The translations under genes and the position numbers were made by a program. Under the pieces are notes generated by a model. That model made no database searches. It saw nothing but the letters and a program-made list of their open reading frames with translations, and was not told the DNA's origin. This document shows, one piece after another, positions 14,602-64,000 of a stretch of DNA of 64,000 nucleotides (the first letter of the stretch is position 1; every line of letters starts with the position of its first letter). Source of the DNA: Rebecca billardiae RCC1528 (taxonomy: Eukaryota > Protista > Haptophyta); assembly GCA_965240325.2 (NCBI GenBank), contig OZ251225.1, positions 3,038,001-3,102,000 on the forward strand, read 5' to 3'.

Positions 14602-15049
14602 GGCGGTGTCGATGAGGCCCCACACAAGCTTCGCAACGGAGCGAACGGCGGCGTGGCGAGCGAGAGAACTAGTTCTCGGTTACGACGAGTCGGTCGGTTT
14701 CCGTTTCGATAGCGGCGCCTGCGCACGAAAATAGCACCCGAGCAACGGCATATCGTTTTGCGGGTACAGGTGGGTACTCCGTGCTGCCGAAACGCGGGCT
14801 TGTCGAGGCGGTCGCTCGGCATGCGCTTTTCTGGCGCGGGATTCTGACCATCAGGTTTCCGAACAGCCGAGGAAAGTTGCAGGAAATCTGTGGCTTCGTC
14901 ACCGCGTGCTAAACGCCCGCGGCGGAAGGCGGACCCTTTGTGTGTGGTACGATCGTGCAGCTCAAGAACAAGTAGCGCGGCCGGTTCTGCTCGGCGCGTG
15001 CCAGCGGGTGAATCGCGCGGATCAGCGCAGCCTCCCTCCCCCTCCGTTG

Positions 15050-59277: not shown

Positions 59278-60387
59278 TCATCCGTCATCGGACTCATCCT
59301 CTGCACGTCTGCGCTTCTGCGCATCCAACGAGGCCCTGTGCACCTTGCTCAGCGCTATCCACAGCTTCCACGTGGTGTACGGCGCCTTGCGGCACAGCGG
59401 CACGAGCACCTGCGAGAAGATGTGCTCTCTCGGCGGCCGCCATTCGTGGGCTGGGATCGGAGCCTGGGCGCTGGCCGCAGCTTCTGCAGCAGGCACGTCC
59501 GACGGCCAACGGACCGCCGCGGCCATGGCCTCAGCGGCGGCCTCCGAGAGATCGAGCTCGGCCGCTTCCGCGCCGCTCGCCGCGCCACCATCGGGCCGTG
59601 CGCGCCAGGCGAAGTGGCCAGGCTTGACGAGCACCTCCTCCACGGCCTCGGCCTCGTCACGCTTGGGCAGCGCGAACGCGGACAGGGCCTCCCTGAAGTC
59701 GGACGCCGTCGCGTCACGAAGGTAGCAGGCGAGGGCCAAGTGCGGCACCTGCACGCACGCGGTGAGCGTGTGCAGGGCGATACAGTGGCCGATCGACGCC
59801 GGCGCGTCCCTGCCCGGCATGGCCATGGCGTTGGCCGCGCGCATCAGCTCGCTGACAAGGACCTTGGCCGTGGCGTCGGGCAGCGTGGCGCCGGCGCCCT
59901 TCAGCACGCCGAGCACCTGGGCGTGTAGGCGCCCCTCGAATATGGACTTGCCCGCCGGGATCGCGAGCGGCACCTTGCGAATCGTGTCGTACATTTCGGA
60001 GGCGGCGTCGGACACCGCGCGCCGAGTGTCGCGTCGCGCTCTCGCTGCGAGAGAGCCGGGGTCGGCAGCGAGGGCCTCGTCGAGACCATCCTCCATGGCA
60101 GCGTCGATGGCAAACTCGATGTTCCAGAAGGCTGACTCCGGGCTTTCGCCGAGGAGATCATTCAGCTCCATGATGGGATTGGTCAGACGAGTTGGCAGGC
60201 CGTCCCCAGCGGGCATCGCGGCCATCTGGATGTCTGAGTACTGCGCGGTGATGGTGTACTTCCAGGAGAGGAGCCGAGTCAGGTGCGTGCCAGTGCAGAC
60301 GCGCACACAGAGGTTGGAGCCATCCGGCGGGGAGACGGGCGCGGCGGAGTCGTACAGCCCCGCGGGCCCCGGCACTAGTCGCTGCAT
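59278..60387 (-). CDS. Hypothetical protein, 369 aa
   Basis: Single long ORF with globular composition and GC3-rich codons; no recognised motif. Confidence 0.6.
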   Translation of the reverse strand: MQRLVPGPAGLYDSAAPVSPPDGSNLCVRVCTGTHLTRLLSWKYTITAQYSDIQMAAMPAGDGLPTRLTNPIMELNDLLGESPESAFWNIEFAIDAAMEDGLDEALAADPGSLAARARRDTRRAVSDAASEMYDTIRKVPLAIPAGKSIFEGRLHAQVLGVLKGAGATLPDATAKVLVSELMRAANAMAMPGRDAPASIGHCIALHTLTACVQVPHLALACYLRDATASDFREALSAFALPKRDEAEAVEEVLVKPGHFAWRARPDGGAASGAEAAELDLSEAAAEAMAAAVRWPSDVPAAEAAASAQAPIPAHEWRPPREHIFSQVLVPLCRKAPYTTWKLWIALSKVHRASLDAQKRRRAEDESDDG

Positions 60388-60585
60388 GGAAGGACCCGGC
60401 CGGCGGGGCCGCGCTGTGTCTCGGCTCGGCGGTCACTCGGTTGCTCAGCGACCTCCGATCCGCCAAACGCGACTGCACGCTCACCTCTTTGAGTAGCCTT
60501 CCCGCGCTGGGCGGGACCCTTTTTTTCAAGCGGTTTTATTTGGTCAATGATGGTGAGGTCCATTTAAGAGAGAAGGCTGGCTCCA

Positions 60586-63196
60586 ATGACGGCTGCTCCG
60601 CCAGGGCAGTGGACGAGCGTCCACCAGGCGAGCTCCACCGATGGGGCGGACGACGACGCGCACGCCGCAGACCCACCCGCCACCGCCTCGCCAGAGGCTG
60701 ATGCCGCCGTAAGGCGGGTGCTCGGAGACGCGCGCAAGGCGGGACGGATCCGGCGGCTGCGCACGTCCGGCCCGCCCTTCGCCGTGGCCCTCACGCTCGT
60801 TATTTGCGGCGTGACGCTCTTCACGCGGATCCAGGAGGAGGGCTTCGAGGCTAGGGCGTACGAGGTGCCCTCGCAAGAGATCGCGACGTACTTCCTCTTG
60901 ATGGCCATGCCGTTCGCGCTGCTCAGCCTGCAGCCGTCCGACACGTTCGCCACGGCGTTCGTCCTGCTGGCGATAGCGGTGGCCGTGAACATGATCATCA
61001 TCACGATCCTGTCCGACCTCGACAACGTGCTCCGCGTCGGTCGCTCGTGCGCCGAGCGGCAGGCGCGGCTGATGCTGTACGGCCGCGCGGGCTTTGACTT
61101 TGCCGGCTACGGCACCGCCGCCGTCTTCTCTGCGAGCGCGGTGGCGCAGTGGGCGTGGCGGGAGTGGCGGCACCGGCGGCGGCGGCGGGGGGAGGCGGCC
61201 GGTCGGCCGCCCCCCTCCCCCGGAGCCCCCGCCGCCCCCGCTGCGCCGCTGCCCGAGCGCATCACCGGGCGCGCGCTGCTGCTCCGGCTGTGGGCGGCCA
61301 TCGCCATGCTGGCCGTCACCTCGTCCGCCTCCGCCTTCCTCTGGGGCGGCTTCCAGGCGGCGAGCTGCTCGGAGCACGTCGCGGGCAGCGGGTGCAGCTT
61401 GCGCCTGTCCTTCGCGAGCGGCGTGCTCTCGGCCGCCGTCGCGATCTTCGCGCTGCGCCCGTCCTCGCGCGTGTGGGTGCACTCGCTGCTCGCGCCGCAC
61501 ACACACGGCGTCGCGTCTGCGGCCGGTGTCGCCTCCATCATCGGCGGCGCCCGGCCCGAGGAGATCCTGGCGCGCGGGCGGCGGCGCATGCGCGCGATCC
61601 CGTGCGACCGGCTCGACCGCTCGCTCTTCGCCACGAACGGCCGCATGGACAACCGCTGGTTCAAGCTGCACTCCGTGCCGGCCGAGCTTGGCAGCGTGGA
61701 TGCCTTTGTGAGCCACTCGGTGCGGCGCCATCACCGCGCCGGGCGGCCGCGCGCTGGCCGCCCATGCCGCGGCGCGCGCGCCACCGCGCCGGGCAGCCGC
61801 GCGTCTGCGCGCGCCGGGCGCAGCGCGCGCGGCTTGCGTGTGTGCGCGCGCGTGCGACCTGTGCGCGCGCGAGGGGGCACGGGGCGGCGTGTCGACCCGA
61901 GCGGCTGTGCGCGCGGCCGCGCACTCATCGCATGCCCCGCGCGCACCCCTCGCCGCGCGCACGCGCGCACAGTGGCACGATGACCCGGAGGCGAAGTGGG
62001 CGGCGCTGCAGGCGTGGCGGCGCGACTTCAAGGCGCGCGAGGGCGGGCGCGAGCCGCGCATCTGGTTCGACCGCGCGTGCATCGACCAGGAGGACGTGAG
62101 CGCCGACCTGCCCTTCCTCCCGGTCTACCTCGCCGGCTGCCACCAGCTGCTGATCCTGTGCGGCACAACGTACCTGCAGCGCATGTGGTGCGTGGTCGAG
62201 CTGCTCGTGTTCGAGCAGATGGGCGGCGACGACGTGCAGATGTACCTGCTGCCCGGGCTGGAGGCGGAGGCGCTGGGCAGCTTCGAGCTGGCGGGCTGCC
62301 GCTGCGCGCTGCAGTCCGACTTTGAGCGGCTGCAGTCGGCGATTGAGAGCGCAGTCGGCTCCAAGGAGGACTTCAACCAGCTCACGCGCGCGCTGCTCGC
62401 GCGCTCGCGCACGGCGACGCTGACTCCGGCCGAGCTCGCGGCGGGCGCTTCGGATCAGCACGACGGGAGCTCGCGGCGCAGCAGCTCGAAGGCGCCCGTC
62501 TTCTCCGGCAACCGCCGCGCCTCGGCGCTGCGCGGCCGCTCGCCGGTCAAGTCGGCCAACCCCGGGCCCAGCGCGATCGAGGCAGGCACGGCCGCGGAGC
62601 CGAGCGGCGACTCGGCCGCGCTCGCCACGCCGCGCCGCCGGCTGCGCGACAAGCACCTCACCGCGATCGTGCTCGTCGTCGCGATGGCCCTCGGCTTCGC
62701 CGGAGGCGCGATCGGCGGCGCCGCGGGCTCGAACGCGGCGTGCGCAGAGTGCGAGCGCATGGTCGGCGCGCCGCCGCCGCGCGACAAGGCCCACGCCGTC
62801 CGGCTCGGCGAGCGCCGCTTCACCGTGTGGCGCACGCCGGCCACGTGGCGCGAGGCTCGCGCCGAGTGCGCGCGCAGGGGCGGCGGGCTCGCCACGGTCA
62901 GCTCGGACGCGCAGCGCGCCGCCGTGCGCTGCCTGCTTTTCGACGACGTGCGGCCATCGTGGATCGGGCTCTCCACGCGCGGCGACCCGGAGGACGAAGC
63001 GACGTGGCGCTGGACGGACGGCAGCCGGGCCGTGGCGCACAACAGCTGGAAGGCGGATCAGCCGCGCGAGCCCGACGAGGGCGGCGAGCCCGCCGCGGGC
63101 GACCCGAGCGCGTGCGCGAGCACGCTCGCCGGCTGGTGGGCCGCGGAGTGGTGCCAGCACGAGCGCAGCTACGTCTGCGAGTTCGCTATCGACTGA
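60586..63196 (+). CDS. Multi-pass membrane protein with TIR-like domain, further TM helix and C-terminal C-type lectin domain, ~785 aa. Exons 60586-61719 and 61973-63196
   Basis: About six hydrophobic helices. Splicing 61720-61972 creates DAFVSHSWHDD...IWFDRACIDQ...YLQRMWCVVEL. TM LTAIVLVVAMALGFAGG. CTLD TWREARAECARRGGGLATV...WIGL...WRWTDGS...C...C..ERSYVCE. Confidence 0.85.
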
Positions 63197-63233
63197 CACT
63201 GATAGTGGCAGCGGCTGATCACACGATGACTGC

Positions 63234-63635
63234 CTCGGATAGTGGTTTGAGGTTGGGTGAGGGTGGTGGTTGGTTGGGGGCTGGCCAGGGTAGGGCTGGA
63301 GGCTTCGGCCGCCAGTCTGATCACCCGGAGCCCGTTATTATATATTATAAAACTATAAAGGGGAAATTTAAAAACACCGTCACCGGTCGGCAGGACTTAT
63401 TAACGTGATCTCATCACGCGTATATTTGACTACCCCCCCCCCCCCCATACCCCCATATGTGTTTTTTCTGTATGTCGTCCGGTTCCACGGTATTTGATGG
63501 TCCTTTGGTTCCACTTTTAAATTCCCCTTTATAACGGGCTCCGGGTGATCAGGCTGGCGGCCGAAGCCTCCAGCCCTACCCTGGCCAGCCCCCAACCAAC
63601 CACCACCCTCACCCAACCTCAAACCACTGACCGAG
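63234..63635. repeat. Inverted repeat with ~100-140-bp arms around an AT-rich spacer, likely transposon-derived
   Basis: 63241-63338 is the reverse complement of 63531-63628 (one mismatch); the match extends through TATAAAGGGGAA(A)TTTAAAA after an indel. Confidence 0.88.
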
Positions 63636-64000
63636 ACACCTAGTGTCTTGACACCACTCCACTGTGGACAGCCCGCCTCCAGAGGGGGCGGGGGTATGCC
63701 ATTGCCAACAGCATACGAGCCCAACACTGTGGGGTGGTCCCAGGTACAAGCAGTGTACGGCCTTGCAATTCAAGATCACCGAGTTTGAGCCGAGTCGGCA
63801 GAAGGGGCACCCCCTAGGGTGCCCCAGTGTGGGCAGAGGGCCAGCCACTAGCCGATCCCTGCGCGGGGAAGGGAACTGAGGGGACTGTCATCGAGCCCAG
63901 TAGCTGGGCAGGGGTCTGGGCCACTGGCCCTGGCAGCGAGGCGCCTGTATTTCACTCGTGCAGCTATGGAGGCAGAGGGGGTCATGTCAGACATGTGTGC

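Follow-up and report, generated by a model that had tools for sequence, protein, structure and literature searches.

How could a single polypeptide of a unicellular alga carry a lectin-like domain and a TIR-type signalling domain on the two faces of a membrane, and what would such a protein do? This question is raised by a gene found in a 64,000-nt stretch of DNA of the haptophyte Rebecca billardiae RCC1528 (contig OZ251225.1 of assembly GCA_965240325.2, positions 3,038,001 to 3,102,000 of the forward strand), which is referred to below as the window and in which all coordinates are given. The predicted product contains, from its N-terminus, (i) a module of six transmembrane (TM) helices, (ii) a domain with the modelled fold of TIR domains and a sequence signature shared with HET, (iii) a seventh TM helix and (iv) a C-type lectin-like domain (CTLD). 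This arrangement had been proposed in an earlier note, made from the nucleotide sequence. The gene structure, the domain identities, the fold, the conservation of residues and the conservation of the whole architecture were computed in this study; as regards function, we tentatively favour that of a membrane receptor.

Gene structure and continuity of the reading frame

Inspection of the open reading frames (ORFs) and of possible splice sites revealed a two-exon gene on the forward strand (60586-63196), whose spliced product comprises 785 aa (Table 1). The start codon (ATG at 60586) is preceded, seven codons upstream, by an in-frame TAA. Removal of the intron joins DAFVSHS of exon 1 directly to WHDDP of exon 2, which restores the invariant motif of the family (DAFVSHSWHDDP). 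The sequence DAF(V/I/L)SHSWHDDP is uninterrupted in all relatives, and the placement of the splice junction is therefore fixed by the homologues. Full-length members of the family are homologous to exon 1 in their N-terminal parts (alignments A2 and A4).

The G+C content of the window is 70.6%, a level at which open frames alone carry little weight, and for this reason codon periodicity is important for the gene model. The G+C content at codon positions 1, 2 and 3 is 0.69, 0.58 and 0.92 in exon 1 and 0.71, 0.58 and 0.96 in exon 2; such periodicity is absent from the intron (0.83, 0.86 and 0.83) and from the flanking DNA. When exon 2 was scanned in 150-nt segments, the G+C content of the third codon position (GC3) was 0.92-0.98 in a single frame from 61973 to 63172, i.e. 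throughout the TIR-like domain, the linker, the TM helix and the lectin part.

The earlier note had assigned the lectin part to the same gene. The unbroken, frame-specific GC3 bears this out, as does the occurrence of the same architecture in four proteins of other organisms (P0100, P0032, P0024 and P0022), which were found when exon 2 was used as the query in an exhaustive HMMER search of protein cluster representatives. P0100 (722 aa) gives one continuous alignment to exon-2 residues 3-403, and P0032 (732 aa), P0024 (833 aa) and P0022 (563 aa) match at both ends of the query. Each of the four has a C-terminal Pfam Lectin_C domain, and they share with the window protein the order TM helix, (A/E)(D/E)CxxC motif, CTLD. 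P0100 is encoded by a single unbroken ORF on an 8.9-kb genomic contig, next to a cyclin gene that is apparently split by an intron. The contigs of P0032 and P0024 (2.5-2.9 kb) contain nothing but the respective ORF, a transcript-like layout. The six-TM module and the TIR/HET-like domain also form one ORF in a Trinity transcriptome assembly (P0003 of EukProt, listed under Gymnodinium smaydae).

It could be argued that the gene model is an artefact, i.e. that the CTLD or the six-TM part belongs to a separate gene and that the long ORF is a by-product of a G+C content of 75-80%, at which stop codons are rare. The model was indeed read from DNA alone, and other frames of the same region also hold long ORFs, such as one of 424 aa that overlaps the gene on the minus strand (61925-63199). 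The high GC3 is, however, confined to the proposed frame, in which it continues without a break; the TM helix, the CxxC motif and the CTLD are homologous and identically ordered in the four relatives, one of which (P0100) is a single genomic ORF, and the transcriptome assembly joins the six-TM module to the domain that follows it. We regard an artefact of this kind as highly improbable, and judging by the codon periodicity and the relatives it also appears very improbable that the lectin part alone is a separate gene.

A search of public contigs returned one run, with 6% of the words, which covers only positions 60957-61162 and a repeat (63241-63342) and is uninformative with regard to transcription and splicing. 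Two genomic contigs (L001 and L002; Logan) are 99.9% identical to the gene and show one non-synonymous and one synonymous change, too few for a test of selection. The former, at position 60989 (C in both contigs, A in the window), converts Asn135 in TM helix 3 to Thr and is the sole amino acid difference seen in the gene. A tblastn search of the 64-kb window for a second copy revealed none beyond the gene itself. One match (14849-15010; E 0.025) was rejected as a chance similarity located inside a myosin gene.

Domains and conserved residues of the predicted protein

According to the earlier note, the middle part of the protein is a spliced TIR-like domain containing the segments FVSHSW, WFDRACIDQ and RMWCVVEL. 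All three are present, and they match near-invariant positions across more than 100 cluster representatives, in which the additional motifs SHSWxDD, WxDxxCIxQ and LPVYLxGC were recognized. The homology of the domain to independent proteins is well marked (E 1e-17 to 1e-38). The window protein produced no match to Pfam TIR or TIR_2 at E <= 1, and its match to Pfam HET (13.5 bits; E 0.092), which spans 17 residues (profile positions 46-62), is below the gathering score of 22.5. Among 128 relatives, sub-threshold matches to HET were obtained for 89 (best E 1.3e-4), to TIR_2 for 71 (best E 1.8e-6) and to TIR for 14.

Because the intron splits the domain in the window, a homologue with 49% identity to it (P0002, residues 69-234) was modelled in its place, using a 128-sequence alignment that included the window sequence. 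The model has a mean predicted local distance difference test score (pLDDT) of 94, a predicted template modelling score (pTM) of 0.89, and strands alternating with helices. In a Foldseek search of the PDB, the best 50 matches were all TIR domains (best E 1.2e-3, probability 1.0, TM-score about 0.5), and the same was true of the best 50 matches obtained with VIA-align (Z 9.9-8.0 over 100-136 residues, root-mean-square deviation 2.7-4.4). They include RPP1, RUN1, SNC1, MyD88, SARM1, SPARTA, AbTir and TLR15. Profile searches of PDB sequences (alignments A1, A3 and A6) yielded only non-significant TIR matches (SIGIRR, 0.08-0.6; SNC1, 0.47; TLR15, 0.22) among unrelated proteins.

On this modelling evidence, the fold of the middle domain is that of TIR, and its sequence signature is intermediate between those of Pfam HET and TIR_2. 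HET, a cell-death domain, is remotely related to TIR, and HET-like sequences have been reported in Haptophyceae (PMC4986451); a TIR fold combined with an intermediate signature fits both observations. The designation "TIR-like" can thus be retained for the fold as modelled on the homologue, and since neither Pfam cut-off is reached the domain is best named HET/TIR-like. A hydropathy peak at residues 424-442 corresponds to a buried core strand of the TIR fold and not to a TM helix.

The Glu of the WCxxEL motif, which the earlier note had stated to be retained, is Glu454 of the spliced protein. An equivalent Glu is found in 126 of the 128 relatives, and W409, D411, C414, R448 and W450 are present in all 128. 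Conservation of this kind is more suggestive of an active site than of a patch on the surface. In the P0002 model the Glu position falls within a helix (92-103). In an HMMER alignment with the TIR domain of TLR15 (7ylf), the E-value of which is not significant, DAFVSHSWHD is paired with FDAFISYSEHD and WCxxEL with WCQYEL. We take the position of Glu454 to be that of the catalytic Glu of SARM1 and of plant and bacterial TIR enzymes.

The seventh TM helix and the C-terminal CTLD were both recovered as first described, the former as a hydropathy peak and the latter as a full-length match to Lectin_C (positions 2-107 of a 107-position profile; E 2.2e-12; 48.1 bits, the cut-off being 22.6), which is the only Pfam domain above cut-off on the two exons. 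A TM helix is found at the equivalent place in P0100, P0032, P0024 and P0022, and (A/E)(D/E)CxxC is kept in all five proteins with a C-terminal CTLD. The four canonical cysteines of the CTLD (C677, C759, C772 and C780) occupy invariant columns of alignment A5. The same alignment agrees with the earlier note in that the sugar site is non-canonical, with QPR present and WND missing. The homologues show EPN (P0022) or QPD (P0024 and P0141) at the first of these positions and WHD (P0024) or WDD (P0141) at the second. Since QPR and WAA replace EPN/QPD and WND in the window protein, its sequence makes classical Ca2+-dependent monosaccharide binding unlikely. When the lectin part is considered alone, its closest relatives (26-32% identity) are giant environmental proteins of 1300-3300 aa with 7-15 C-type lectin repeats (P0018-P0040 and others). 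The linker that precedes the seventh TM helix is unrelated in sequence and unconserved among the homologues. It contains RRxS-type motifs (SRRSSS, NRRAS and RGRS) that could be phosphorylation sites.

The N-terminal module was predicted by AlphaFold2 from exon 1 and 54 aligned relatives (pLDDT 83.8, pTM 0.79). The model contains six long helices (36-84, 94-113, 120-151, 155-204, 228-260 and 266-290) and shorter ones within residues 292-334. A hydropathy scan of the window protein detected five of the six, besides the later seventh (as 607-625); helix 4 is weakly hydrophobic here and is seen in the homologues. The count of about six N-terminal TM helices given in the earlier note agrees with these results. 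Conserved motifs of the module are RRxRxxGP, before helix 1, and LxLLPxD, after helix 2; the linker that follows carries AAGIAxLLxG in the family, with A312 and A313 nearly invariant (54 sequences). No convincing relative of the module was found among solved structures: Foldseek returned nothing from the PDB below E 0.3, and a wide VIA-align search gave only generic helical hairpins and bundles (Z <= 9.7, below the meaningful level for helical proteins). The nearest ESM Atlas clusters are members of the family itself and are commonest in Haptophyta. A Pfam match of exon 1 to MauE (E 0.47) was dismissed as noise.

The TIR-like domain and the CTLD had been placed on opposite faces of the membrane. 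This placement holds whatever the number of upstream helices, because a single TM helix separates the two domains. The sequence before TM1 (6 of 15 residues) and the loop between helices 4 and 5 (RHRRRRR) are rich in Lys and Arg, and the 1-2 and 5-6 loops are poor in them. The CTLD side carries seven cysteines, as befits an oxidizing compartment. Based on this positive-inside pattern and on the cysteine-rich CTLD side, we infer that the N-terminus and the TIR-like domain are cytosolic and that the CTLD is located outside the cell or in a lumen. The sole feature at odds with this orientation is the loop between helices 3 and 4, which contains five Arg.

Table 1. Position of the gene, its exons and the predicted features of its product within the window.
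Feature	Coordinates (strand)	Residues or size	Description
Exon 1	60586..61719 (+)	378 codons	N-terminal tail, six-TM module, helical linker (predicted cytosolic) and first TIR/HET-like strand; ends FVSHS
Six-TM helical module	60772..61455 (+)	about 63-290	AlphaFold2 model md71781f0b792
Helical linker, predicted cytosolic	61459..61671 (+)	292-362	Motif AAGxAxxxGG ... RxRAxPxDxL; model helices 292-302, 307-320, 324-334
TIR/HET-like domain	61706..62452 (+)	about 374-538	Interrupted by the intron after the first strand; alignments A1, A3, A6
Intron	61720..61972 (+)	253 nt	GT..AG, 84% G+C, phase 0
Exon 2	61973-63196 (+)		Opens with WHDDPEAKW, directly after AG and in another reading frame than exon 1; stop codon TGA 63194-63196
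Glu454 codon	62198..62200 (+)	454	GAG; E of WCVVEL
Linker	62441..62653 (+)	about 535-605	Ser/Arg/Ala-rich, probably disordered and cytosolic; ends in basic RRRLRDKH
Seventh TM helix	62657..62728 (+)	607-630	Hydropathy peak 2.36; five K/R before, one after
Juxtamembrane CxxC	62741..62752 (+)	C635, C638	Within ACAEC; predicted outer side
C-type lectin-like domain	62837..63184 (+)	exon-2 residues 289-404	Pfam Lectin_C (PF00059)
QPR	63059..63067 (+)	Q741-R743	At EPN/QPD position; alignment A5
W-A-A	63137..63145 (+)	W767-A769	At WND position; alignment A5

Relatives and genomic surroundings of the gene

The HMMER search with exon 2 identified 118 representatives at E <= 1e-30. Their usual length is about 500 aa, and most of them consist of the six-TM module and the TIR/HET-like domain and carry no ectodomain. 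The window protein shares with them the six-helix module, the AAGIAxLLxG linker and a domain with SHSWHDD, WxDxxCIxQ and RLWCxxE (alignments A1-A4). On these sequence features, it is a member of a large, mostly haptophyte 6TM-TIR/HET family, within which a small subgroup is distinguished by a C-terminal TM helix, usually followed by a CTLD. Lectin_C is found in 22% of an ESM Atlas cluster of 116 members, and two proteins (P0075 and P0078) have the C-terminal TM helix without a CTLD. Since most members of the family carry no lectin, the CTLD may be viewed as an add-on that is not necessarily the sole sensor.

Other arrangements of the same parts were also encountered. In P0141 (734 aa; a cluster of 14 ENA, Logan and JGI sequences) the order is reversed, with a signal peptide, a CTLD (33-156, with QPD), several TM helices and a TIR/HET-like domain (559-715). 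P0017 (1110 aa) is a tandem duplicate of the whole multi-TM and TIR/HET-like unit, its two TIR/HET-like domains lying near positions 312 and 810. When a tree was built from the TIR-like domain (128 rows), all seven proteins that have a C-terminal TM helix fell into a single group of seven rows, with a Shimodaira-Hasegawa-like approximate likelihood ratio test (SH-aLRT) value of 8; the tree is compatible with a single origin of this subgroup, at low branch support. When IMG/VR was scanned for the family patterns, no viral relatives emerged.

Upstream of the gene, there is a divergently oriented ORF of 369 aa (59278-60387, minus strand), with no Pfam family on record. Only some 200 bp (60388-60585) separate its start codon from that of the gene, an interval that looks like a shared bidirectional promoter. 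Downstream, an inverted repeat begins 35 nt past the stop codon. It consists of two 108-nt arms (63231-63338 and 63531-63638; 96% complementary) with 192 nt between them, and its G+C content is lower (about 52%). The arm sequence recurs on several unrelated contigs of another run, which identifies the repeat as a repeated element resembling a miniature inverted-repeat transposable element (MITE), at or in the 3′ end of the gene.

Proposed function, rival explanations and known systems

The function that we favour, without putting it at quite an even chance, is that of a receptor of the cell surface or an endomembrane. The CTLD would bind an external ligand; with neither the EPN nor the WND ligands in place, this is probably something other than a simple Ca2+-bound monosaccharide. 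Binding would alter the mutual packing of the membrane-tethered TIR/HET domains. In known TIR enzymes such packing turns on NAD(P)+ cleavage or the synthesis of a signal nucleotide. The altered packing could likewise elicit a Glu-dependent activity that consumes NAD(P)+ or makes a signal, and so lead to defence, a stress response or cell death. We infer this mechanism, from ligand binding through oligomerization and enzyme activity to its biological role, and the orientation of the protein on which it depends.

A stronger version, which we consider fairly unlikely, is that the protein is a receptor-enzyme with a polarity inverted relative to that of Toll-like receptors. Its lectin-like domain would capture a viral, bacterial or conspecific ligand and thereby assemble the HET/TIR domains into an enzyme that consumes NAD+ or makes signal nucleotides, directly triggering defence or death in an alga of a bloom-forming lineage. 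If true, this would also reveal the enzyme activity that has long been sought for the HET branch of the superfamily.

Several observations weigh against a receptor with an enzymatic domain. The equivalence of the Glu is based on a motif and on HMMER alignments that are not significant, and this Glu also occurs in many TIR domains that act as scaffolds, not enzymes. The window protein remains under the Pfam cut-offs for both TIR and HET, the fold comparison was made on the homologue P0002, and it gave marginal Foldseek E-values (1e-3) and TM-scores of about 0.5. The canonical ligands for sugar and Ca2+ are absent from the CTLD, and the core function of the family needs no CTLD, most of its members being without one. 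The membrane orientation is deduced from the distribution of Lys and Arg, the cysteines and hydropathy, and the case for one gene is built on codon periodicity and on relatives. Finally, enzyme activity has been shown for no HET domain (PMC10197012).

One alternative is a non-enzymatic scaffold, in which the TIR/HET-like domain only makes homotypic TIR/HET contacts, like the TIR domains of animal Toll-like receptors and adaptors, and the Glu has a structural role. Pure adaptors (MyD88) match the model at the same Z as enzymes, the best PDB matches at the sequence level (SIGIRR and TLR15) are both non-enzymatic, and an adaptor-type action of HET was proposed by Dyrka et al. (PMC4986451). Nevertheless, the near-invariance of the Glu together with the strictly invariant Trp, Arg, Cys and Asp residues suggests an active site, and enzymatic plant TIRs are the best structural matches; we consider the scaffold unlikely. 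Distinctly unlikely, in our view, is a role outside immunity, with the six-TM module working as a channel, transporter or lipid handler under the control of the cytosolic domain, and the CTLD serving in adhesion, in the binding of a cell covering or mineral surface, or in gamete or self recognition. Such a role would agree with the presence of the module, with its LxLLPxD motif, in nearly all family members, mostly without an ectodomain, with a CTLD that has no sugar-site residues, as in non-lectin CTLDs, and with the function of HET domains in fungal self/non-self recognition (PMC4986451, PMC10197012). On the other hand, neither Foldseek nor VIA-align found a transporter or channel fold for the module, the loops at the EPN and WND positions vary among the homologues (EPN, QPD, QPR), which suits diversifying ligand recognition, and TIR/HET domains are known almost solely from defence and death signalling. 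The probability left over from the favoured receptor, these two alternatives and the gene-model artefact discussed above belongs to explanations that we have not considered.

TIR-fold domains are the most widespread signalling modules known in immunity and cell death, and little is known of their use in unicellular eukaryotic algae. Haptophyte blooms end through viral infection. TIR genes of Gephyrocapsa huxleyi have recently been linked to viral resistance. The gene described here is a testable entry to a large, uncharacterized 6TM-TIR/HET family, with a recognizable outer binding domain. It offers a starting point for studying whether HET/TIR-like domains cleave NAD+, what triggers these domains, and whether algae possess surface pattern-recognition receptors built on a plan that is neither animal nor plant.

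TIR domains with many partners, the relationship between HET and TIR (PMC4986451, PMC10197012) and haptophyte TIR proteins with TM helices or ectodomains (PMC12489294) were already known. The literature searched contained no description of a 6TM-TIR/HET-TM-CTLD layout, nor of an algal lectin ectodomain fused to a TIR-fold domain. The statement of the earlier note that no receptor with this layout has been described stands to that extent, with the reservations that the layout is not unique to this gene and that multi-TM TIR proteins of G. huxleyi were reported in 2025 (PMC12489294). Judging by their description (New Phytol 2025), which also covers single-TM forms, the TIR domain of these proteins retains the Glu and is preceded by several TM helices at the N-terminus or by an extracellular region; the multi-TM genes respond to virus infection, and a receptor-like role in this response was proposed. 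No lectin or other extra domains, and no C-terminal TM helix with an ectodomain, were reported in that work (PMC12489294). One relative of the window protein, P0009 (41% identity), comes from G. huxleyi and bears the UniRef name "TIR domain-containing protein".

Toll-like and IL-1 receptors resemble the predicted protein in having an outer binding domain, one TM segment and an inner TIR-fold domain, and weak alignments to SIGIRR and TLR15 were obtained. The window protein differs from them in that it has no leucine-rich repeats (no Pfam match) or immunoglobulin ectodomain, its CTLD ectodomain is C-terminal, which reverses the order, and it possesses six further TM helices and a HET-like signature. 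In animal C-type lectin receptors of type II, e.g. Dectin-1, an outer C-terminal CTLD with four canonical cysteines follows the TM helix and the N-terminal side is cytosolic, as is predicted here. These receptors signal via motifs of the immunoreceptor tyrosine-based activation motif (ITAM) type and kinases, whereas the window protein carries a fused TIR-fold domain, QPR and WAA in its CTLD, and an extra membrane-adjacent CxxC. With fungal HET (PF06985), which is the cell-death effector in heterokaryon incompatibility, the family shares the WxDxxCIxQ block, which is the part matched by the Pfam profile in the 89 relatives mentioned above, in all cases below the cut-off. Fungal HET proteins are soluble or form the N-terminal parts of NLRs, whereas the window protein is predicted to be a polytopic membrane protein and its WCxxE block is nearer to that of TIR.

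The enzymatic TIRs (the plant TNL/TIR-only proteins RPP1, RUN1 and SNC1, SARM1, ThsB of Thoeris, AbTir and the TIR-APAZ protein of SPARTA) have the same flavodoxin-like alpha/beta fold as the P0002 model. They also share the Glu of WCxxE, which lies where helix C begins, four residues past a conserved Trp. In its first strand (DAFVSHS) the family also resembles box 1 of TLR15 (FDAFISYS). Sequence identity is 10-17%, and the window protein differs in its HET-like extra motifs and in the tethering of the domain between two membrane-spanning parts. The activity of the enzymatic TIRs depends on oligomerization, which a membrane receptor could control.

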